DNA of 63,739 nucleotides, the filler included, from Guillardia theta CCMP2712 (taxonomy: Eukaryota; Protista; Cryptophyta): the NCBI RefSeq assembly GCF_000315625.1. It is 9 parts of 9 records of this genome, joined end to end, with 100 filler letters (N's around TTAATTAATTAA, not from the genome) between each part and the next. Parts side by side here need not be neighbours in the genome. Positions count along the whole stretch, not along the records: positions 1 to 11,658 come from NW_005434592.1; 8 more parts are not named here. One strand, written 5' to 3'. Positions 1-15,760 of the stretch are shown here, piece after piece. Below the pieces are notes generated by a model, which made no database searches, had not been told where the DNA came from, and saw nothing but the letters and a program-made list of their open reading frames with translations. Positions within the stretch are counted from its first letter, which is position 1; the number at the start of each line of letters is the position of its first letter. A program made the translations under genes and the position numbers.

Positions 1-547
1 CACGCACTTCAAGGCGGGAAGTGCAAACTAGCCGACACGACAGCATGCCCGAGCTCACTGCCATGCCTGTTCGTCCTCTCTCAGCCCGAGACTTGAGACG
101 AGCTGCGGGTACCTAGACCTCTTTCCTCCCTCATCTCCCCCTCCTCCATCATCTCGTTTCTCCTTGTTGTTGTTCCAGGCATCCGATCCCTCCCCTCCTC
201 CATCTCTCCCTCGATCGCTCTAGCATGAATTTCGTCTGACATGTTTGTACTCGTGTAGAGACAGGACCCAAGTCAAGTCGGCGCAACTCTGATCGAGCTT
301 TCTTCGATCCCTCACAAGACTTCCGGTGACGTTTTTCCCATTCCTCTTCCTCCTCTTCCTCCTCCTCGTTCTCCTTTCCTCCTCCTCCCCCTCCACCCCC
401 TCCTCCCCCTCAAGCTTCTTTCAGGCCACAGCCTTACCGCCATCAGTTGGAGCGGATGAAGAAAGCGTCTGCTGCCCTCCAGCACTCGCCGACCCCCAGA
501 GAGGCGACGACGTTCCTCTTCTGACCGCCATGGCGCAGCAGCTGTAA
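1..547 (+). CDS. 3' end of a multi-exon hypothetical gene (partial)
   Basis: Coding-like blocks separated by pyrimidine-rich GT..AG intervals; converges on the next gene. Reading frame not resolved. Confidence 0.3.
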
Positions 548-674
548 ACGTGTACAAAGATGGGAGAGGTGTAATCGACTGTAAACATGTTCATGTGTGA
601 GATAATGAATATCAGCAACTCAATTCATTACGATCATCTTGACTAGTTTTACATTAACCGAAGCAGGGCTCCTC

Positions 675-2340
675 TCAGTAGATCCATCCTGCCTGCATGT
701 AGACCGGAGGAGCGTCCATGGCCTGGCAGCGGACCCTCTGTGAGGGTCGTTGTTTGATATCCATGAGAGGGTAGGGAGAGACGGCGATGGCAGCAGCGGC
801 TCTCTTGACGCTGCCTTTCATCTGATAAGGAACGAGAATGCTCAGCTGGGGCTGATGCCTCGCCGGCAGCTCTTGACGGTATCGCTTGCTGGCGTTCACC
901 TCGCTTGATCGCCTATCTGACTGAACGATGGGCCTTGAAGTAGAACCTCGAGAGCTCTGAGAGCCTTGCGAGGTCAGCGAGCCTGGACGAGTTTGAGGTC
1001 GAGGAGTATCAAGATGGTCGACGTAGCTGACGTGACTGACTGGATGTGTGCGGGTCTTGTGGGTGCCTGAGGTGGTCAGGCCGAGGTTGGTGCCGTACTT
1101 GCGCAACAGGTCCTCCTCAAGCTTGTGCAGCGAGTGATGGTAGAGCTTGGCGATCTCAGGGGCCTCAGACACCTTGGCGGGGTTGTGCTTGAGGTAGAAC
1201 TGCTTGAGGTAGAACTCCACCTCCTTGCTGTGCAGCCTCGCAGGCGGAGCCGGGTTGTGCTTCGGGACGTGGCTTGTGAGGGGGGGACTGAACCTCCCGG
1301 CAGGTTGAGGATACCAAGAGTCCAGCGTGCTGCTGTTGCTTGCCACGACTATGTGCTCAGTTGAAGCATTCTGACAAGATCGAGAGCGTTAGCGATTCCG
1401 TGGCAACGTAAGGAGTGATACCTGATGATCAGTGCTCGATGCCACAACCATCTTGTTCCTCTCCATGAAGACAACCTTGCACGGACTAGATTGCGTGAGA
1501 ACGATGGCATCTTGAACGTCCTTCTCCTCGTCATCTGAAATCTTGGGGCTCTGAACGCAGCAGTCAACAGCAGCCAACACGATCAAGCAGATCGATCGCT
1601 CGTCGTCTAATGTCTCCTCACCTCAGTGACATGGTGCGAAAGCTTCGCCTTCTTCGACTCTTGCATGCTCCCGTCCTCCACGACCGTGGTGGAGTCCGAG
1701 GACAGCGAGCTGACGGCATCATCTGCTGCAAGTCAGGTCTCGTCGCATCACGGCATGCAGGGGCTGACCGATATCGAGCAAGATCGCTGCATTGACATCA
1801 TGCTCTTTGTCATCCACGCTCGTTAGAGTGGACCTCCAGTCCTGCCAGCCCACCGTTGGTTGGCTGCACATCTACATGGCAGTCAGAGCTGTGAAGCAAC
1901 ACAGCCGTCTAGCCGACCTGTACTTCAGCTGTGTTGACTCGATTCGATGCCATGGACAACATCTGCACTAAACCATGAGCTCATTCTGAAGTTTCTTCGA
2001 ACTTGGTATTGATGAATTCGCTTTGTTTGAATCAGGTGTCTTTCACAGAACTTGTAGCTTCTTTCAAGAATGTCGTTTACAGAGCTATCAGTCGAGAATC
2101 GTTGAAATCCATTGTTCATGATTTCGATTTCTCATCTGGCCTCTCAACATATGACTTCACCTTCTCACATACTGAAATCTCTCCGCAGCAAATGAACTGA
2201 TCTTCTCACCATGACTCGCAACATTATCCAACACTCCGCTCATAATTTCACTGCATCTCCACGTCCTTGGTTCCTGTGCACGTCCTGCTGCTGCACTACA
2301 ACCTCACACTCTCAGAGGCGTTCTAATTATCCTCATATCC
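675..2340 (-). CDS. Multi-exon hypothetical protein with a small helical 'FY.KHNP.K....I...Y....L...L..KYG' module
   Basis: ORF 675-1346 contains EFYLKQFYLKHNPAKVSEAPEIAKLYHHSLHKLEEDLLRKYG, a module recurrent in protist proteins. Upstream coding-like exons lie at ~1420-1570, ~1620-1830 and ~1920-2300; the start is uncertain. Confidence 0.5.
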
Positions 2341-2579
2341 ATCGTCATTTTATCTTCACATGTTTCTAGTTATGATCGATAGCGACTGAAGCATTGGACC
2401 CTATCTCATGCCCTCTCCACCTCTCTTTGTTTCTCTTCGCTCCTCTTGTCTCATCTCCTCGCTCCTCTTGTCTCATCCTCGATCTCTTTCACTCTCTTCA
2501 TTTCGTTCGTCTTTTCCTCTCTCGCTCGCATTCTCTTCGCTGTCGTAATGCCCGATGTTTGCATTCCCTAAGGCTAGTC

Positions 2580-3780
2580 CTATTGCCACCCCTTTCGTGA
2601 CCCACCCCCACCCCTCTCCCCTGGTACATCCCATCCCGATTCGACTTTATGAACGCTACCCCCACCCCTTCTTGGATGGATCCAACCACCCCTTGCATCC
2701 CCTTCGGCGACCACCCCGTCAGGATTCGAGCCTCTTTGAAAATTGTCATGAAATTTACGGTTCTCCAGGGGGTGGGTTATGGTACCCACCCTCCCACAAC
2801 CACTTACGACTGAGTAGATCGGACCACCCCCGTCACGCCAACTCGGTACCCCACCCCTTGACCCCCCGGTGCTACCGTGATCAGACCTCCTTGGGGTGCG
2901 GCAAAGCCTGACAACGGCGTTGGGATTCTCACTAGGGGTACTTTAGCAGCTTAAAGAAGGGGTGATATGGTTACAAATATCCATCAGCCTGCGCGGGAGG
3001 GGTAGTCCGATGGTACGTGACCAATGATTTCGTCCGCCCCACACCCACCCTACCCTTGAGTCGGCAGTGATTTCTATCTTCCAGTACCCCACCCTACATT
3101 AAAACTTTTGACTCCTTTAGAGTTTTCGCCCCTACCCCCTTTCAGAGATCCGCCACGTAAACCGGAACTGTACCAGTCACGTGGGCCTACAAATACTGGT
3201 AGAAACTGTGTAGCAATTCTGGGAGGGGAGGGGGAGGGGTTGTAGGATGAGTCTCGGAAAGGACCGCAGCTCATAAATGAGGGGGTAGGGGTGGGGTGAG
3301 GCTCTGGGGCCTTGGCGATGTGAGTTGAAGATCACGAGGTTCTGGCGACCAGCGGCCACCAGAGGTGATGGCCCAGCCAGAGCTGTCTAGGTCGAGGGTA
3401 GTGCTCTCTTACTTAGTGATTCAATCGATAAATAATCTGAGTCTGATAGGAGCTCAGGGTGCAGAACTTTACTGTCACTTTCACGCTGTTGTAAACTGGA
3501 GGATATCCATGATGACATACGAGTTGGAATCTGGCAGCCTACCTACCCCCTGACCGCACTCTGACTCCCACCCCTTCAAACACCACCCCCTCGATCAAAT
3601 TCAGCGTCATGGTCACTATCGCCACCCCCGCATGGCACCGTTGTACGGTACTCTCACCCCGGCCGGTCACCCGAGTCGGGGTGGGGGGTACCATTTCCAT
3701 ACACCGGTAGTTCTTACTCATGACTACCCTACCGTTGGGCCCAACTTCCGATGTTCCGACTTCCGACTCACCGTACTGAC
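2580..3780. other. TACCCC/CACCCC- and GGGGTA-rich intergenic tract
   Basis: Dense C4-5/G4-5 runs preceded by TA/CA; no credible ORF. Confidence 0.6.
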
Positions 3781-4885
3781 AGGACTTGGGCCCCATGACC
3801 GATGACCCGTCGGAGGGGGGCCCGGGGGTCCGAGCAAGCCTACTACTCACTTTGAGTAAAGACTCACCCGCTCAGCTCAGCCTGTCCCGCTGGTCCGATC
3901 CCCGGCGGGGGGTGGGAAAGGTACCGTACCGTACCGTACGGACATGATCGGACCGTACAGGGTACTGAACTCGGAATGGCCCTACCGTGTGATCATGGTA
4001 CCGGACCCGGGAGGCGTCAGTGACAGTCAGAGGTATCTGATTGGAGGCCGCGGCCTTTTTGAGAGTTGATTTGGGACCTTTTTTTTTTCTTTACTTCCGA
4101 TCACTGTCACTCTGTTACTCTTTACTCAAAGTTGAGTTAAAATTCAGTACGAGGACATTTGCCAGTCGTCACTCACCGGTGGCACCGGCGCTGCACTCCG
4201 ACACAGGCTGCCGCCGAGTCCGTCAGGCACCGTCGGTACCTGCCGGTACTGGCGGCAGACTGTCACTCAGCCGTCGGCCGAGAGGCCGAGTCACGTTGAG
4301 AGTCTCGGAGCGCCGCGGTCACCGGGTGCAGGCCGACCTTTCCGACCTTTTCAGTCCCGGCCGGGCCGTCCAACGGTTCAACGGTTCAAGTCCCGAGTGG
4401 CCCCGGGCCGGGCCGCGCCCGCGGCCGCCGCTGGCCCCCCCAGAGCCGAGTCACGACGGTCACCGGCACCTGACTCAGTGAGCCGCGCACTGCGGCACTG
4501 GCCGTGACGGTGACTGTGACCGTACGGTGACTGCCAGTTGGCATGCCATGATGACATTCGCCGGGACTGAGCCTGAGGGACCGGTGACCCCGCCCCGGCG
4601 GCGCCGGCGGCTCGGCGGCACTCAGCGCGCGGCCGGGCCGGCGGCCGCGGGCGGCGCCGTCACAGTCACGGTGGCACCGGATCGGACGGTACGGTCACGG
4701 TCGTACCCCGGGCGGCCGCTCGTACCCGGTAGTTCGGTGAGTTCCCGAAGTCACGGAATCCGGCCCGGCCGCCGCCCGGCGATGGCATGGGCCTGACTCT
4801 CACGGTCAGTGCCACCATGTACGGTGAGTAGCTCCCGGCTCGGAGTCCGAGTCCGACGCGGCCGGCGGAAGCCAAGTTCGCCGCG
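3780..4885. other. GC-rich intergenic island 1 with the conserved AT-rich motif at 4121-4156
   Basis: Rich in CCGG, GGCC, GAGTC/GACTC, GTCAC/GTGAC and CCGTACGG; contains TTTACTCAAAGTTGAGTTAAAATTCAGTACGAGGAC. Confidence 0.7.
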
Positions 4886-5046
4886 GGCCAATCATCATAA
4901 TAATGTACAAAAGTTCACTGATGCGGTTCAGTTATGTAGTAGTACAGTTAAGAATTCTACAACAAATTGGCAAGAGCGATGCCATGTACATTACTGAGCT
5001 TATTGCAGTTGCCTCAAATAGTGTCTTGGCTCGATCTCCTGTCCTC

Positions 5047-7264
5047 TTACTTCACGTCAACAGCAGGTTGCATCATGGAATCATGCATTCCGTTCATGCC
5101 ATTCACGTTGGAAAAGCCTGGGATACACAATCAATCAATCACGTTCAGTTTGTCAGACTCGCAGTCATCACCTTGCATGCCATACGCTCCCATCAGATCC
5201 ATGCCGTACATGGATGCATTTGCTGGCATATAACTGAAGGCACCAGACCCATTCTGATAAGCACCGGCAGCAGAAGCCATCTTCATCATATCGCGATAAT
5301 TGTTCATGTCTGGGTGCATCATATGGGGCGCGTTGGGCATATTTCCAGTGAATGTTTGCTTCTGTGCAGACAGGATTATTTTTGACCCTCAACAGAAAAC
5401 AGTTTCAGGACTGACCTTATTGAGGTTGGAATATCCCTTCTGACCACTGAAGGCATTTTGTTGCGGATATGGTTGTCCTCCATACATCTGACCGTGCACC
5501 GCACCATAATTGGTGAATTGGACGGGAAACATGGGAGTCATCTACCAACTAACATCATTTACAATATAGGGCTATTGATAGACAGACCTGTGTTGGAGCC
5601 ATGTTCCAGTTCATCATGTTCGCTTGCCAATTCATCATGGTAGCCTGTTGCATCATTTGCTGCTGTACACTTGCAGCCCCCGCGTTCTGTTTCATCGACA
5701 TCTGGCTCTGACCATCCCTGTTGACCCCATATGAATCCATGCGAGACTGCCCATTGACCTGAGGCAGCCTGCTCTGGTTTGAAAACATTCCACTCGCTCC
5801 CATGCCATACATCGGTACCCCGCTGTCGGCAGGAATATTTGCAGAACTTTGAACACCCATCGCCGACGACATCATTCCCATGGGATACATCTTTTGAAAC
5901 TGGTCGTGCGCAATATTCTGATTGAGGTCTTGATGCGCAGGATTGATCTGTGCAGGATTTGTATCGTTCTTGCCAAGAGTGTGTTCCTCCGCAAAACTGC
6001 ATAATTCCTACTTACAAACGCTTCCTTGATATACACAAGTCTTACCTCGAAGACGTGTTAGGCAAAATGTTGGCATTTTGGTTCTCTTCTTTGCGGTTGA
6101 CTTCGACTTCAAGCAGATTCTCGCTTTGGGTGTTCTGCGATGATTTCGCCGACTGTTGAGGTTCAAGAGCTCGTTGATCTGAGTTGGCGCTTGCCGGGTC
6201 TGTAAAAGAGTGTCAGTAAAATGACAAATGAATTCAACATCAAATGAGTAGAAAATCTACCCAAAGTATCCATGGATGCCGCATTTGCAGAACCATCTGC
6301 ATCGTTCTTGCCGTTTTCGCTCTTTTGACTCGTTGATGCTGGAGAAATCGGCTTTGGTGCAAACAAAGATTTGCTCTCAGCAGCATTACTCCAAGCTGGA
6401 GTAGTGCGTGAAGGCAATGGTGGGCTGGCATTGTTCTGCTTCAAGTATTAAAAATAAACTTTAACCAGGAATTCATGTCCAACCGTTTCTGCCGAGCGAA
6501 CGGGAGACGGCGTGGAAGCCATGCCTCCTTGGCTGGAGGCTTCAAGTTCTTGAGAGCGCACTTGCTCTGGGCCAGGAGATTTCTTTGAGCGGTAACCACT
6601 ATCAGGTGACTGGGCAAATGTGCTCGATCTGGAGAAAAAGTCAGATATTGCGCTACTTCATGGTCACAGCCAACCGGTCAGAATGTGCATTCCTGTCCTG
6701 CCCGGAAGGAGACTTCGACTTGTCCTTAGCAAAGTTTCTCTTCTTGTCACCATGCTTGTCATCTGCATGTACCTCTTTCAGACACTGATCGCGATCGACG
6801 AGTCTATGGTTACCCTTGTTCCTTTGCCCTCGGCCCTTTGGTGATTTCTCATCCTTGCTCGGAGACTTGTCAGACTTCTTCTTGCTGCGAGTGGTAGTGG
6901 TCCAAGTGCATCCTATCAAGTGATGAGTCAGTGATGTATCACGAATGACAGAGAGGGGAACAATCTCTAATGATAATCTCTCATGATCTTCATCTGACAT
7001 CTACACTAGGGCAAGACGATCGGGTGTGTAACTTACTGGTCAACTCCTCCTCCAACTCGGAGAAAGCCTTGTCATGATCCATGTTGTTGTTCTCAAGGGC
7101 ATCCATGACACGCTGTTCAGGAATAACATCGGTACCTTCGCTTGCAGGTCAGAACCCTTTCATCTTGCCAGGGCGAACAAACCTCCGAATCTCGCATTAA
7201 GAACTTCAAGGAGGACTTTGCAGCTGCTGGCAGCGGCGTCATCAACTTTGGACGCGGGAGGCAT
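5047..7264 (-). CDS. N-terminal UBA-like domain, low-complexity (M/Q/G/N-rich) protein, UBAP2/GIP1/Def1-like architecture
   Basis: Spliced: MPPASKVDD...ARFG|TDVIPEQRVMDALENNNMDHDKAFSELEEELT|..CTWTTTTRSKKK. The AL..NNMD...A...L pattern followed by W....KKK matches the UBAP2/GIP1 N-terminus. A prion-like C-terminus ends ...MMQPAVDVK* (TAA at 5047-5049). Confidence 0.6.
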
Positions 7265-8021
7265 GGAGGACGAGATCAGATGGATACGCTTCTGTCGGGT
7301 CGATCACGAGTGGGGTGGCGAGGGGGAGGAGAGGGGCGGCAGGGAGACTTGCTGGCTCGCGAACGGAGGGGGCGGTGGTGGAAGAGGGGATCGGGCTGTG
7401 GAAGGCGGGAAAACAGCCCCCTCGGGGGGTAGGGTAGTACAAGTTGCACTGTCATAGTGGGTGGTTGGATATTGGTACGGGTACTTTAACAATGAAAATT
7501 TAGGGTACTTGCCTCAATGGCTCACGGGAGTGGGTAGGGTAGATGGTGAGAGGCTTTTTTGGGGCGGAGGGGAGGGTCCGTTTTCCCGCCCTTTTTCCCA
7601 TTTTTGTGGGTCGCATTTTAAAAGTAGGCGACTGAAATTTAAAGGTTTCCTTGGTCTGGTAGTTTCTGGGGAAAGTGGTGATATTAATAAAACTAAATTA
7701 TTTTTAATGGCCACAATCCCTCTAAGAACTGGAATAAACTATTGTAAAATTTCTCACTCTTCCATTATAAAAATGCCCCTTTTGTACCAGAAATTGTACT
7801 GGCGCCAAAACGGTTAAAACCATTCCAGCACGCGAGCATTTCAGGCCCAGCGGTAGCGAGGAAGAGGAGGCAAGGACAGAGGAGACAAGGATAGGTGCGG
7901 GCGGGCGGGGGTGAGGATGGGAGAGGTTGTCGGATCAGGGAGGGAGTGAGAGGAAGAGAGTGTAGTTGCGTGTAGCAGTAGACGAGGAGAGAGTGCTGTG
8001 AAGGAGAAGAAGTTGACAAGA

Positions 8022-8501
8022 ATGCTGGGGCAAGCACAACCTGTCCCTTGCTGACTCCGTTGGCTCAGGAATCAACAAAGGAAGCGAGCAGCTAGGTTCA
8101 GGATACATCGAATCATCGAGCTGTGCAGGTACGAGCTCGACGGCGACCCTCTCCCACCATTGCATGTGCCCTATGATTACTCCTTCAAACATAGAAAATC
8201 AAAATCAAGTCTGAGAACCCTTGAGGATAACGTTGTAATGAGGGGCTGTGCCTGTGTTGTCTGCACGTTCTAGCAGCGACTTGATTTCCTCCTGACGGAC
8301 CATGCAGGTCACTGCAGAGCCGGTTGCCCGCCCACCTCCCCGTTCCACCTTGGAAGTCTTTTTAGTCTTTAATGATCTACACTGCAAGCGTCTTGAATGA
8401 AACTGTGAGGAGCTTGACAGGCAAAGTTGAGAGGTGTGTGTGCGGGACGGTATCAGCTGCATCTCTTGCAGAGCTTCTCCTCTTTCATGCAACTTTCCTG
8501 A
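8022..8501 (+). CDS. Possible small multi-exon hypothetical gene
   Basis: Tentative splice gives MLG|NQQRKRAARFRIHRIIELCR|KSKSSLRTLEDNV|...; needs a GC donor and has no recognisable homology. Confidence 0.25.
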
Positions 8502-8535
8502 GAGCTCCATGGCACCGACTTGGTTCTGGAGAGTC

Positions 8536-11065
8536 TCATGGTACTGCCCCGTAGTATCCAGCGAGGCGCTCGGGGCCGTAGGAGGAGTTGGAAGGATTTT
8601 TGCCCTTGGACTGCAGGAGGGTCAGGGGTGCAGGATAAAGGAGGGGAGTGGGAAGGAATGGAAAGGAGCAGGAGTTCGAGGAGGGTGTGGAGGCAGTGGG
8701 AGAGGGAGAGGGAGGGGGAGAGGGAGAGGGAGAGGGAGAGGGAGAGGGAGAGGGAGAGGGGGAGGGGGAGGGAGGAGGGGAGGAGGAGGAAGGAGAGAGT
8801 GGGGGTGCAGGGGAGGGGAAGCGAGCATTTTGCATCACCTTAGACCGCGCGAGTTTCTCTTCCCTCTCGTGCCGACGTTGGTAGTAGAGGTTGGCAAAGA
8901 TGCCGATGACGCTGCAAAGGACCTGAAGGCAGGGCTGAGCGGAAGGAGAGCGCGAGAGAGCATCGCTCACAGCGAAAGTGAGGATCATGATGGCGCCCTC
9001 TACCAGCATCCCGCTGCCTCCTGATGATCCTCCTCCGAAGGTGCACCTGTTTCACGTCTTGAGCTCTCCTGGTGCTGCTGCTGCTCCTCCCCCCTCCCCC
9101 TCCACAGCTCTTTCTTCCTACTCTCTGTTTCCCGCCTCCCTCCCTTCTTCTTCTCCCTCATCCCTGAGCGCCCTCGATCAACTTACTTGCCGTACGACGG
9201 TGCGTTGGGGATGCAGCGCGTGAAGATGCCGAAGACACTGGAGCCTGTGGCATGGTGAGACGATTGAGAGAAGCGAAGAGAGGGTGGGAGAGGGAGAGGG
9301 GAGGGAAGGAAACAGAGATTGGGGAAATGAGAGAGATGGGGAGAAAATCGTTGAGGTTGTGCAGGAGAGCGCCCTGGAGGAGGAGACCTGTGTCAAAGAT
9401 CACGGTGAACTGCTGGCGCGGAGTCCCGACGGACACGTTGATGAAGTACTAAAACACAATGTGAGAAAAGAGGGAGAGGGAGAGGGGGAGGGAGAGGGGG
9501 AGGGGAGGGAGGAGGAAGAGGGGGAGGGGGAGGAAGGAGGGGGANNNNNNNNNNNNNNNNNNNNNNNNNNNNNNNNNNNNNNNNNNNNNNNNNNNNNNNN
9601 NNNNNNNNNNNNNNNNNNNNNNNNNNNNNNNNNNNNNNNNNNNNAGAGGAGGACGAGTAGAGACCAAGACGCAGAGAGTAAGAAGGAGGAGGAGGAGGAG
9701 GAAGAGAGGAGGTAGGTAGCAAAGGAGGGAAGGGGAACGAGAGGAACAAGAGAGTTTGGATTCCAAGAAACGGAGCATGTTGATAAGACCTTGGAGATAG
9801 TCGCATGGCGCTGAGCTGGGATGTAGTTCTTGTTCTGCTTGCCGATGCCGATGACTACTGTCTCGGGATAGTGCCTGGTAGACGGAACATACTTACTTCC
9901 TCCTCCTCCTCCTCCTCCTCCTCCTCCCTTTCCTCTTCCTCGAATTCCTGTAACCCTCTGCCACTCCACTTCATTGTTGCCTTCCCTCCCCCTATTCCTG
10001 ATTTCCCCTCTCATCTTAACTTCACAACTCCTTTCCCCTTCCCTTCCCCTTTCCCTGGGCAGCCCTCCTCCTCCCTGCTCCTCCTCACCTGAGGTCGAAC
10101 AGTACCACAAAACGGCGAAAGAGAACGTCGCCGATAAGAAGACCTCCGAAGCCAGGAGGAGCCTGAGAAAGAGAGTGAGCACGAGCAGAGGAGACAAGCG
10201 AGGACAAAGCCGAGAAGACGAAGAGAGGACAAGACGGAGTTAGGTAGACGAGGAGGGTAGGAGGAAAGAGAAGAAGAAGACAGGAAGGAGAAGGAGACAA
10301 AGAGGTACGACAAGGAGGAGGAGGAGGAGGAGGGTGAGGAGGATAGGCAGGCAGGTAGGTAGGTAGGTAGGACCTTCTGGACGCAGGATTGGTTGGAGAG
10401 GGACAGCCACCAATCGTCGTAGGGGATCTCAAACGTGGCGCCTGGGTTGCCGCGTCAGGTTGCAAGGGAGGAGGAGGTGGTGAGAGCTGATGGCCGTCGC
10501 TGCAGCACCTGCGATGTTGAGGTAGAAACTTTCCTTGACGGCAGGCTTGTGGGTGTTCTTGACGAGGCCCTTCCACTGGTGCCGGGGCGAGTCAAGGGAG
10601 GCAGGGCACTGAAAGATCTGCTCCTTACCTTGGCGTACGGGGACTCCTTGAACAGCCCGTTCATGGTGTTGTCCGGCATGACAAGGCAGCTGATGGGGGG
10701 GGAGGGAGACGTCAGGAGGAGGGTTTGAGAGGGAGGAAGGGAGGAGGAGAAGATGACGGTGGGATGGGTTATGATGGTGGGATGGGAAAAGAACTTGTTG
10801 CAATGTTGATGACAAGAACAAACATAGGCCTTCACCTGGTCCCGCTGTCCATGATGGCAGGGAGGTAGCGAAGACGCTGGGGATGTGAAGTGAGCGACGA
10901 AAAACAAAATTTCCTTCCTCTTACGGGATTCTTCGGAGTGAACTCCAAGAGCTCAACGTCCCCGAACCTGAACATAACCACATCAACCAGCCATGTGGTC
11001 GATGATTACATGCCATCATCGTCAACATTACAACACTATCGTTATCAACATTACTATCATTGTAG

Positions 11066-11108
<43 letters not shown>

Positions 11109-11515
11109 TTTCATCTCACTTGAGCGAGAGCGCAACGACGACATAATCGTTGATCGTAATCGAGGGTGTGAGGAACATCTACGGACCAAAAGTCAACCCC
11201 TTCCTCCTCCTCCTCCTCCTCCTGCTCCTGCTCCTCCTGCTCCTCCTGCTGCTCCTGCTCCTCCTTCCTGCTCCTGCTCCTGCTCCTGTTCCTGCTCTCC
11301 AGCTCATCCTCTTCACCTTGCCGTTGACTGCCGCCGGGTCGTAACCCCCGAGTTGGATCTCAGCTTTACACTCTCTCTGAGGAGACTGACGGCAAAAATC
11401 AATCTTGACAGTTCTTCCCAGCTCAAGTCCACCTGCTCCCTGCTGTGCGTCGTGTTGCAGTCGGTCGAGAGGAAAGAGAAGGCGCGTCGACGGAGAAACT
11501 TGTTCCTGATCGACC
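8536..11515 (-). CDS. Pepsin-family (A1) aspartic protease with C-terminal transmembrane anchor, 5'-truncated by scaffold end
   Basis: Spliced exons: AFSFLST..|..EIQLGGYDP..|MFLTPSITINDYVVVALSLK|FGDVELL..|LPAIMDSGTS|CLVMP..|..FEIPYDDWW..|GLLIGDVLFRRFVVLFDL|..|YFINVSVGTPRQQFTVIFDTG|SSVFGIF..|..GAIMILTFA|VLCSVIGIFANLYYQRR..|..GYYGAVP*. Confidence 0.85.
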
Positions 11516-11658
11516 CTTGAGAAGGAGGAGCGGGGAGGAGGAGCAAGAAGAGGAGGAGGGAGTGGAGGGAAGGGAGGGAAAGGGAGGGAGGGAAGGGAGG
11601 GAGGGAAGGGAGGGAGGTTGGAGTGGATGGATGGATGGAGTGGAGTGGAGTGGAGGGA

Positions 11659-13699: not shown

Positions 13700-14565
13700 T
13701 CAGTCTAGCTTTACCAAGGGGCTCTGGTCCAATACCCAGTATGCCCTCTTGTTTCCTCCATCCCACACGGTCTCGCGCAGTTTCAGTGTCAAGCTCGAAT
13801 GGTTTCCAAGAAGGTGCACAAGATGCGAAACAATCAGCAGGTTGTACGAGGTCCTTCTTTACAGCTCTTGGGATGAAATAGTCTTACTTGGACCAGCCAC
13901 TGTGGAGTTCGACAAGCTACTGGTCCTTTTTCGACGGATTTTATAACATTCAGATAAACGGGACTGTCAGGATTACCTCTACATGCTACAACTCCATTTG
14001 TCTAAGCGTTGGTCTCTCCCTTCCCTCTCTGCCTTCCCTTAATCCTTCATAAACGCCGCACGTGCCCAGCACAATCAACAACATTGGACGTGGGAGGACT
14101 TCATTCCAACATTGTTTGAGCGTGTATTCCCCGTCCCTCGTCAAACACACCGTCAGGGTTTGCTCTGTCTCCTCCGCCTCGACCCTCGGACCCATCCTCT
14201 CTCACCTACGATCGTGCTCGACACTTGCTGATCCTTCCGAAGGTGGTGTGCATATCCAGGCCGAGCACTCGATCTTCCATGGAAGATCCTTGATGTTGCT
14301 TCCCCTTGCGTCTTGATGTTGATTTTATTCCACGAAAAGTAATTCCTCGAAAAGTCAATGTCAAACATCGAGCTGCAAGGCAATGATGATCGAAGTCGAA
14401 ACAGATTGGAGGATGTACAAGTACTGTTGCTATTCCCTTCATCTCAAAGATCCGAGGTAGATATATGATACAAGATATCAGATGGAATTCCTTCAGGAGC
14501 CACGAAATGGAAATCTCAATCTCTCACGGGAGATCGAAAGAGTGTCGCCGGGCCGGACCAGCCAT
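13700..14565 (-). CDS. Possible multi-exon hypothetical gene
   Basis: Coding-like composition; plausible last exon ...LVHLLGNHSSLTLKLRETVWDGGNKRAYWVLDQSPLVKLD*. Structure not resolved. Confidence 0.3.
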
Positions 14566-14740
14566 AGCGCAGCATCGTACAGTCGATGCGAACAAGAGGC
14601 AGCAAGAGGCGACATGATCAGAAGACTTCTGAGGCCTCGACCCTAGCCGCTGCCCTCCGATCTCCCCGCATGATCCACAGGTGTTCGTGACTACCTCCTA
14701 CCCTATAGGGACACCCTCTGATAACCCCTACCACCCCCTC

Positions 14741-14880
14741 AAATACTACCCCTTATTTCTCCGATGACCAAATATCACCCCTTGTTTCTCGAATGAATAC
14801 CCCCTTCCCAGTGAAATACTACCCCTTATTTCTCCAATTACTACCCCCTACCCTGTCAAACACCACCCCTTATTTCTCCA
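14741..14880 (+). repeat. Four degenerate copies of AAATACTACCCCTTATTTCTCC with variable spacing
   Basis: Copies at ~14741, ~14770, ~14814 and ~14858 within a TACCCC-rich tract. Confidence 0.8.
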
Positions 14881-14985
14881 TTAACCACCCCCTACACCAT
14901 GTCACGCCCCCTCATGTCTCACGGTTCTCAACCCGACGTGCCAGAGCCTCATCCCCTCACTGACCATCCCTGCAAGCCCTCTACC

Positions 14986-15760
14986 GTAGTACTGCAAACA
15001 TAACTTAACTTTGATGAGTAAAAACCTTAGCGCGCCCTTTACTGCTGCTTACGTATAATCAGTCCCCGGCCTCCGAGGCTCCGCCCCCGGGCCATGGCCG
15101 GCACGTGACTGGACCCCGCAGTGCCGCCTTTAAGGCAGGCTTTCCGTGCCGTGCCGCCCGTGCGGCCGGGCGCCACCGATTGTACGGTCACGGGCCTGGC
15201 CCTTCAAGGCTTATAAAAATAATTGTCGGCAAGACTCCTTCTTTACTCCAAGTTAAGTTAAAGATCAGCCTACCGAGGACAACGAGTCATCATAGTATAG
15301 TCTGTCAGGCTGAGGAGACTCACTGTCAAGTCGAGGACTCCGGCTTCAGTGACTCGGACCCGCCCGCCGAAGGAACTTGGAATGAGACGCATACTACGGG
15401 CCGGGATGCTCTAAGTACTGAAGCCTCGTACTGATGATTTTAACTTAACTTTGAGTAAAACGATCAAAGTAAATGCATTAAACTGAGCGTTTGGCCTGTG
15501 CGACACTGTGTCAGGTTCAAGGCAAGCCTTGAAGCCTCCTGGACTCTCCTGTCCTCGTACTGATTTTTACATTAAATTTGAGTAAAGATCAAAGTTTTTA
15601 ACTCAGGTAACTTTGAGTCAACTGAGACTGTCCACTGAGCCGGGGCCACGGCCCGGCCCGGGCCGGCGGCGGCCGGGCGGCCGCTGAGGGCCCGGGGCCG
15701 GCCGGTCGGCCCGGACTCCGGGGATTCACCATGGCCGCTCACTCACTACAGTGAGGGCCC
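14986..15760. other. GC-rich intergenic island 3 with at least 4 copies of the AT-rich motif in both orientations
   Basis: Motif at 14986-15023 (-), 15242-15280 (+), 15424-15459 (-) and 15551-15586 (-). Confidence 0.8.

Follow-up and report, generated by a model that had tools for sequence, protein, structure and literature searches.

A 63,739-nucleotide (nt) stretch of the genome of the cryptophyte Guillardia theta CCMP2712 (the window) carries, on its minus strand between positions 11520 and 8536, the greater part of a gene for a pepsin-like protein with a single transmembrane (TM) helix. We found that this gene encodes a naturally circularly permuted pepsin, i.e., one in which the segment bearing the N-lobe catalytic aspartate follows the C-lobe; it is neither a pepsin with a third DTG motif nor the product of a mis-join. 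The explanation that we favor as a whole, and consider very probable, is that of an active, membrane-anchored A1 protease whose hairpin completes the active site of its own chain and whose permutation had a single origin. Direct support exists for gene structure, transcript, segment order, family conservation and, as predicted, the overall pepsin fold. Pepsin-like proteases are among the most studied enzymes, with a textbook fold built by duplication of a half-domain.

The gene is located on scaffold C82 (396,975 bp), from which the window contains C82:163008-174721; unless indicated otherwise, positions are those of the window. It is a nuclear gene of at least 25 exons, and its 3′ two thirds are in the window as a string of short GT-AG exons separated by pyrimidine-rich introns (Table 1). 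The product is a 583-residue type I membrane protein. As the spliced product we used throughout the G. theta protein P0260 (UniRef A0A6U6BKH4), which was found as a transcriptome protein in the 90% cluster of the best-matching orthologue, and its G. theta transcript contig, L038. P0260 matches 23 exon pieces of C82 exactly, and L038 aligns to C82 in 23 ordered blocks, from window-equivalent position 15760 to 7993, that span both assembly gaps of the gene. The identity is 100% at the nucleotide level in 22 blocks, and the remaining one, 5′ and outside the window, has a single mismatch. Only residues 1-46, 237-285, and 500-537 of P0260 lack genome coverage. Positions 1-1728 of L038 contain another open reading frame (ORF) and an antisense Ribosomal_S17 ORF and do not map beside the gene; this first 1.7 kb is probably a chimeric assembly. 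Since the start of L038 is chimeric, the first 71 residues of P0260 do not belong to the real product, which starts at M72 (MRILPFLL).

The elements that a sequence-only reading of the window had listed, namely FSF..GGYDP, DSGTS, the end of the C-lobe, the hairpin, the TM helix and the tail ending in GYYGAVP, are all found on the minus strand where they had been placed. That reading had left two interpretations side by side, a circular permutation or a full canonical enzyme with a spare catalytic hairpin for domain swapping or autoinhibition, whose own DTG would be in a missing 5′ part. The latter owed its appeal to the 5′ end not being visible in the window. The chain had been thought to be cut by a scaffold boundary; the cut is instead a 2,559-N gap inside the scaffold, directly past the window piece (C82:174666-177224), which hides 147 nt, or 49 codons (P0260 237-285). 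Beyond this gap are eight more 5′ exon blocks (window-equivalent 14218-15760; C82:177225-178767), including the start codon. These exons encode a signal peptide, an acidic stretch of approximately 70 residues and then directly the equivalent of pepsin residues ~47-50 (FYPKNSTVYDP...), with no DTG. After the acidic stretch come ..FYPKNSTVYDPSKSKSF.. and ..LAYADNSHLKGF.., which correspond to the pepsin segment past residue 47 and to the flap.

The sequence-only reading had proposed recovering the full-length transcript and counting the D[TS]G motifs. The count gave exactly two in P0260, DSGTS at residue 377 and DTGSS at residue 556, i.e., 179 residues apart. The same holds for more than 200 complete relatives, which also contain two such motifs only. 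The full transcript product thus settled the matter for the permutation, and a full enzyme with a third hairpin, ruled out by the two-motif product, the DTG-free 5′ exons and the order found family-wide, retains hardly any probability.

In canonical A1 proteases, the N-lobe D[TS]G comes first and that of the C-lobe approximately 180 residues later; in the window protein this order is reversed. Its chain begins with the signal peptide and the acidic extension, followed by the equivalent of pepsin ~47-326, which comprises the rest of the N-lobe (flap Tyr, GILGFG) and then the whole C-lobe with DSGTS. Within the window, the exons open with a middle section of pepsin (..FSFLS.., ..QLGGYDP..). In the AIMDSGTS motif, the DSGT codons are at 10849-10838 and the following S codon is split by the next intron. 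The C-lobe closing motif LLIGDVLFRRFVVLFD precedes the last C-lobe strand (..VVIGIGK..) in exon order. Next come a poorly conserved linker of approximately 40 residues and the equivalent of pepsin 1-46, with the first strand, the DTGSS hairpin and then a Cys...Cys loop; going by the known sequence of pepsin, we take this loop to be the equivalent of the pepsin Cys45-Cys50 loop. The chain ends with a Gly/Ser-rich stalk, the TM helix, and a 45-residue cytosolic tail. The orthologue group retains the Cys...Cys loop (..TRCIPNAPSYGKC..) directly before the stalk, and the new termini lie just past it.

Profile analyses gave the same picture. Pfam Asp (PF00026) matched the product and its family with profile positions ~40-309 first and positions 1-29/34 after. 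The hairpin segment by itself matched positions 1-29 (E 2e-8) and the upstream exons in the window matched positions ~148-306; with both segments matching, the resemblance to pepsin is not due to chance. A profile built from 84 family members matched chymosin in the PDB as two significant pieces in reversed order: profile positions 367-407 corresponded to chymosin 2-42 (independent E-value 1.3e-8), and profile positions 39-321 to chymosin 52-321 (independent E-value 1.4e-12). When compared by BLASTP with a natural tandem double pepsin, the permuted sequence gave a single alignment that runs from the DSGTS of the first pepsin unit across the junction to the DTGS of the second.

One of the two gaps, at 9545-9644, is placed exactly between the end of the C-lobe and the hairpin exon, and gap lengths are estimates. 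These two facts speak for an assembly artefact, in which the gap would join unrelated genes or join the C-lobe to a misplaced copy of an N-lobe exon. The stretch hidden by this gap is 114 nt long (38 codons), runs from phase 0 to phase 0 and fits the flanking exons; the true length of the gap thus exceeds its nominal 100 N. Because the single contig L038 spans both sides at 100% identity with this in-phase stretch between them, the two sides belong to one gene and one frame, which disposes of the idea that the DTG and TM exons are a separate gene across the gap. The same order is found in gap-free single ORFs on five other G. theta scaffolds (C9, C40, C15, C8, and C28), and orthologues derived from the transcriptomes of other genera are collinear with the window gene. 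An artefact is therefore extremely improbable.

The permuted order is widespread in G. theta. A search of the genome (87.1 Mb, 669 scaffolds) with the Asp hidden Markov model (HMM) yielded 37 matches. At no fewer than 15 other loci, Asp positions ~40-310 are followed on the same strand, 150 to 700 nt downstream, by positions 1-34. On scaffolds C9, C40, C15, C8, C28, C11, C59, and C55, both parts are in one uninterrupted ORF of 425 to 776 amino acids (aa), in which DSGT precedes DTGS by ~177 to 185 residues (284 in the ORF on C15). The family counts at least 23 loci in this genome (among L001-L036), and many are intronless or nearly intronless single ORFs vs at least 25 exons for the window gene. 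One paralogue, intronless, is GUITHDRAFT_161360, and a further intron-bearing relative was observed on scaffold C392. No canonical-order A1 locus was detected in G. theta with the Asp HMM and a canonical pepsin query, which returned permuted loci only, a search that intron-rich genes could escape. To judge from these sequence searches, G. theta may have only permuted pepsins.

Relatives in other organisms share the arrangement. A short-word-based homologue search retrieved 161 relatives, and an exhaustive profile search gave 139 clusters (50%-identity representatives) at E ≤ 1e-30. Both signature motifs are present in 221 of the 326 proteins collected, and all 221 are permuted, with a median Asp-Asp spacing of 177 residues and a TM helix that begins a median of 50 residues past the hairpin Asp. 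The cryptophyte members come from Guillardia, Hanusia, Rhodomonas, Hemiselmis, and Baffinella; the search for the same order in other cryptophytes, which the sequence-only reading had suggested, thus returned permuted members from the last four. Distant members were found in the jakobid Andalucia godoyi (ANDGO_05950) and the provoran Ancoracysta twista, with 25 to 31% identity to any G. theta paralogue. Homologue searches started from the Andalucia protein or from a profile of divergent members returned almost nothing, as short-word preselection fails at this divergence. Searches of the ESM Atlas by features and by shape gave canonical A1 clusters only and no useful taxa.

A tree was built from the core region with the hairpin left out and is therefore independent of segment order. 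One branch (Shimodaira-Hasegawa-like approximate likelihood ratio test support, 99) separated 47 permuted domains from 8 canonical ones, which is compatible with a single origin of the permutation. Most likely, an A1 gene would have been duplicated in tandem once, after which the first hairpin and all sequence past the second hairpin would have been lost. Tandem arrangements of two complete canonical pepsin units were found in P0194 and P0250 (Cymbomonas tetramitiformis) and in P0242 (Entomortierella beljakovae, 853 aa), and represent a precedent for the intermediate expected under such duplication followed by truncation. They contain the permuted arrangement internally (rest of the N-lobe, C-lobe, linker, next hairpin), and the junction is spanned in one piece by the alignments of both the family profile and BLASTP. 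We rejected these proteins as direct ancestors: they consist of complete canonical units, and their domains fall among the canonical pepsins in the core tree. Moreover, two of the three, P0194 and P0250, have halves of identical sequence, which may reflect a recent duplication or an assembly or annotation artefact; the halves of P0242 have diverged.

We then turned to structure prediction. An AlphaFold2 model was made with the family alignment for P0111, an orthologue at least 90% identical to the window protein. The model had a mean predicted local distance difference test score (pLDDT) of 81.5 and a predicted template modeling score of 0.74; pLDDT was above 90 in the core, 62 to 73 in the linker (residues 421-450), and 90 to 98 in the hairpin strands (456-496), and a helix was predicted at 519-563. 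Foldseek searches with this model returned pepsins only (E ~1e-11, probability 1.00). Using VIA-align, model residues 89-415 were superimposed on residues 47-326 of porcine and human pepsin, residue 326 being the last of pepsin (Z 23, root-mean-square deviation [rmsd] 2.2 to 2.4 Å, ~261 residues), and pepsin 1-46 was left without a sequential partner. By sequence, strands 456-463, 467-474, 479-486, and 492-496 of the model correspond to the first strand of pepsin, the two hairpin strands that lead up to Asp32, and the strand that follows DTGSS. A model of the Andalucia protein gave a similar result, with residues 37-338 matching pepsin 51-326 (Z 22) and pLDDT values below 50 in the linker and of 87 to 96 in the hairpin.

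According to the mechanism that we propose, the C-terminal hairpin would fold back on its own chain and insert into the N-lobe, with the hairpin Asp beside that of DSGTS. The resulting site would be an ordinary two-aspartate site, making the protein an active acid endopeptidase. Alternatively, the hairpin could complete the N-lobe of a neighboring chain, in which case activity would require oligomerization. The linker, long (~40 to ~170 residues), variable, and modeled at low confidence, would permit insertion within or between chains, and the TM helix would concentrate the chains in two dimensions. However, the monomer models place the hairpin with pLDDT values of 87 to 98. In addition, the first and last strands of pepsin are adjacent in the interlobe sheet, as is textbook knowledge, and a short linker is sufficient for intramolecular closure. 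We therefore regard activity solely as a swapped dimer as improbable.

Conservation bears on whether the permuted protein is an enzyme at all. Both catalytic Asp residues and the hairpin DTG are invariant in 67 diverse members, and the two Asp residues are also invariant in 84 cryptophyte-type members. In the C-lobe, nearly all of the 67 have DSG, and the Andalucia member has DSA. The Gly of the psi-loop partner motifs is invariant among the 67. In the 84 cryptophyte-type members, conservation of 90% or more was observed for the flap Tyr and for the motifs GILGFG and GD (with Y118, G160, I161, G163, G387, and D388 either invariant or at this level), and the Tyr of "YAD" was aligned with the flap Tyr of chymosin. 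Two Cys residues, one right after DSGTS and the other in ..CVQ.., are invariant in 67 of 67 permuted members (alignment A3; C226 and C297 in P0192). The sequences suggest that this pair forms a family-specific disulfide, the first position being devoid of Cys in canonical pepsins.

Because both catalytic Asp residues are invariant, the window protein is likely an active enzyme. A permuted nonenzyme, i.e., a membrane-anchored binding protein or pseudoprotease with a pepsin fold similar to the TAXI-type xylanase inhibitors, would account for three other observations: the hairpin also matches Pfam TAXi_N below the cutoff, both D[TS]G motifs have been lost in some paralogues of G. theta, and no propeptide was recognized. 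However, the matches to TAXi_N span only the 25-residue hairpin and are below or barely at the 30-bit cutoff in all but one protein, and TAXI-type inhibitors have lost the catalytic residues that the window protein keeps, so that it does not belong with them. The invariance of the catalytic Asp residues, of the hairpin DTG, and of the psi-loop partner Gly, the retention of the C-lobe DSG in nearly all members, and the conservation of the flap Tyr all argue for catalysis; purifying selection on catalytic residues across Cryptista, Discoba, and Provora would be hard to explain otherwise. A nonenzymatic role of the window protein is thus quite unlikely.

The type I layout, with a hydrophobic N terminus and one TM segment past the hairpin, was found in P0260 and 181 relatives. 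As the catalytic hairpin is only ~20 to 30 residues from the TM helix, the cleft would be held near the membrane. By analogy with animal BACE, the enzyme would probably cleave luminal substrates, or substrates close to the membrane, of the secretory or endolysosomal system. Within the orthologue group, tails from different genera are well conserved (..NPSNSSYGPERLAG[YLM]YG..P), which suggests a sorting signal. The YxxPhi-like motif first read in this tail found only loose support: these orthologues keep a C-terminal Tyr motif, but not in every case the hydrophobic position.

The linker varies from ~40 to ~170 residues across the family and is poorly conserved. Its position in the sequence, directly ahead of the first mature strand, is that of the pepsinogen propeptide. 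That it might be a vestigial A1 propeptide received no support from Pfam, and we retain this only as a low-probability idea. A more far-reaching scenario, which we put forward as doubtful, is that the permuted proteins form an ancient clade present in Cryptista, Discoba, and Provora at least, in which the linker would be a built-in pro-segment tethered at both ends. Its cleavage on activation would yield a two-chain protease whose small chain comprises the Asp32 hairpin and the membrane anchor, and in G. theta, with its more than 20 paralogues, the permuted form would have replaced canonical A1 proteases altogether.

Several observations weigh against the favored explanation or limit its reach. 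The case for an active enzyme is drawn from sequence and predicted models, with the Asp-Asp geometry deduced from AlphaFold confidence and strand order, and the proposed cellular location and substrates are pure inference. The A1 propeptide (PF07966) was not found in the whole protein or in linker segments at E-values up to 10, a weak negative given that the model is short and divergent. Evidence of expression comes from one assembled transcript contig, with its chimeric first 1.7 kb, and from orthologous transcripts. The core tree was obtained by a quick search with few canonical outgroups and has several long branches. Lastly, paralogues L023 (C226:50063-51160) and L027 (C19:210072-210845) keep the permuted core without any D[TS]G and are, from their sequences, likely pseudoproteases. 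Therefore, not every family member is an enzyme.

The permuted proteins can be compared with several known systems. With pepsin, chymosin, cathepsin D, and renin (MEROPS A1) they share, in models, the same bilobal fold (Z 22 to 23, rmsd 2.2 to 2.6 Å, ~255 to 265 residues), the two Asp motifs, one per lobe, the flap Tyr, and the hydrophobic-hydrophobic-Gly partner motifs. They differ in that the equivalent of pepsin 1-46, with Asp32, follows the C-lobe instead of preceding residue 47, in lacking a recognizable A1 propeptide, and in having their own invariant Cys pair (DSGTSC ... CVQ). The predicted fold and the chemistry make the window protein a pepsin-like A1 protease, but in linear order it falls outside the canonical definition.

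BACE1 and BACE2 are similar in layout: a signal peptide precedes a luminal pepsin-fold domain, and a single TM helix at the C-terminal end leads to a short cytosolic tail that carries a sorting-type motif. BACE structures were among the structural matches (Z ~21). However, BACE has the canonical order, with the TM helix after the C-lobe, whereas that of the window protein comes after the relocated N-lobe hairpin. No specific relationship to BACE was found with the family profile, against which BACE1 and BACE2 scored E-values of 1e-13 to 2e-15 (BACE2, ~2e-15), no better than other pepsins. The permuted proteins form a group of their own in the core tree, which also speaks against orthology with BACE. 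Swaposin, the plant-specific insert of phytepsin-type proteases, is also a natural circular permutation linked to an A1 protease, but there the permuted unit is the saposin-like insert, and the catalytic domain of the plant enzyme keeps the canonical order. Full-text searches of openly available papers yielded only swaposin and general papers on circular permutation, with no description of a permuted A1 catalytic domain, and pepsin is absent from the main text of a systematic survey of circular permutations published in 2026. Current database names of family members are limited to "Peptidase A1 domain-containing" or "hypothetical."

The natural permutation means that the strand bearing one catalytic Asp of a pepsin can be contributed by the opposite end of the chain. 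The permutation is conserved across very distant eukaryotes, its active-site residues are invariant, and more than 20 genes in one alga carry it. For the A1 fold, it offers a natural experiment on the order of folding, the control of the zymogen, and evolvability, as well as a plausible route to two-chain or membrane-tethered designs. Annotation that depends on order, such as domain HMM coverage or active-site rules, will undercall or mislabel permuted pepsins. In cryptophyte biology, the finding indicates a large, so far unstudied family of proteases anchored in the membrane.

Table 1. Exons and other features of the permuted pepsin gene in the window, in the direction of transcription. Letters in parentheses denote residues whose codons are split by introns.
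Positions	Strand	Feature	Evidence
11433-11505	-	First exon in the window, encoding RNKFLRRRAFSFLSTDCNTTHSREQ (P0260 286-310); N-lobe/C-lobe junction region	100% nt match to L038 2447-2521; exact protein match
11317-11385	-	Exon encoding SPQRECKAEIQLGGYDPAAVNGK (P0260 311-333); holds FSF...GGYDP jointly with 11433-11505	L038/P0260 match
11120-11178	-	Exon encoding MFLTPSITINDYVVVALSLK (P0260 334-353)	L038/P0260 match
10925-10967	-	Exon encoding FGDVELLEFTPKNP (P0260 354-367)	L038/P0260 match
10836-10876	-	Exon encoding RLRYLPAIMDSGT(S); C-lobe catalytic Asp (P0260 D377, pepsin Asp215 equivalent), codon 10849-10847	L038/P0260 match; D family-invariant
10629-10689	-	Exon encoding CLVMPDNTMNGLFKESPYAK; its first Cys is the one that is invariant in the family signature DSGTSC	L038/P0260 match
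10510-10575	-	Exon encoding WKGLVKNTHKPAVKESFYLNIA(G)	L038/P0260 match
10374-10441	-	Exon encoding ATFEIPYDDWWLSLSNQSCVQK; second family-invariant Cys	L038/P0260 match
10089-10162	-	Exon encoding APPGFGGLLIGDVLFRRFVVLFDL(R), including LIGDVLFRRFVVLFD; hydrophobic-hydrophobic-Gly-Asp motif of the C-lobe (pepsin ILGDVF equivalent)	L038/P0260 match
9790-9875	-	Exon encoding HYPETVVIGIGKQNKNYIPAQRHATISK; last C-lobe strand, corresponding to the C-terminus of pepsin, and first part of the linker; phase 0 at the exon end	L038/P0260 match
9545-9644		Assembly gap, 100 N; conceals 114 nt of coding sequence (P0260 500-537), which comprises the remaining linker and the strand that corresponds to the first residues of mature pepsin (..VDRIPIHNQEMTQ)	L038 3089-3202 without genomic counterpart, flanking exons 100%
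9388-9448	-	Exon encoding YFINVSVGTPRQQFTVIFDT(G), containing YFINVSVGTPRQQFTVIFDTG; relocated N-lobe catalytic hairpin; Asp32 equivalent (P0260 D556), codon 9394-9392	Pfam Asp 1-29, E 2e-8; genome HMM match C82:172393-172455; L038/P0260 match
9186-9243	-	Exon encoding (G)SSVFGIFTRCIPNAPSYG(K), SSVFGIFTRC...; strand after DTGSS and Cys...Cys loop	L038/P0260 match
8971-9047	-	Exon encoding the Gly/Ser-rich stalk and the N-terminal half of the TM helix	L038/P0260 match
8923-8970	-	48-nt in-frame GT-AG intron within the TM-coding region, spliced out in the transcript	L038/P0260 match
8839-8922	-	Exon encoding the C-terminal half of the TM helix, then the basic stop-transfer stretch (QRRHEREEKLARSK)	L038/P0260 match
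8536-8610	-	Last coding stretch; cytosolic tail SKGKNPSNSSYGPERLAGYYGAVP ending in GYYGAVP; stop codon 8538-8536	L038/P0260 match
7993-8535	-	3′ untranslated region, which in the transcript follows the last coding exon without a break	L038 3480-4099 = window 8612-7993 at 100%

If retained, the short intron at 8923-8970 would add 16 polar residues in the middle of the TM helix. In window positions 1-8400, the ORFs had no Pfam match. The introns of the gene are rich in simple repeats, with (GAT)n, (GGA)n, and long CT-rich tracts (11060-11112, 9900-9935, 8640-8830, and others), which probably account for the assembly gaps. CT-rich sequence is also present at 11613-11650, upstream of the first exon in the window, and plays no part in the finding.

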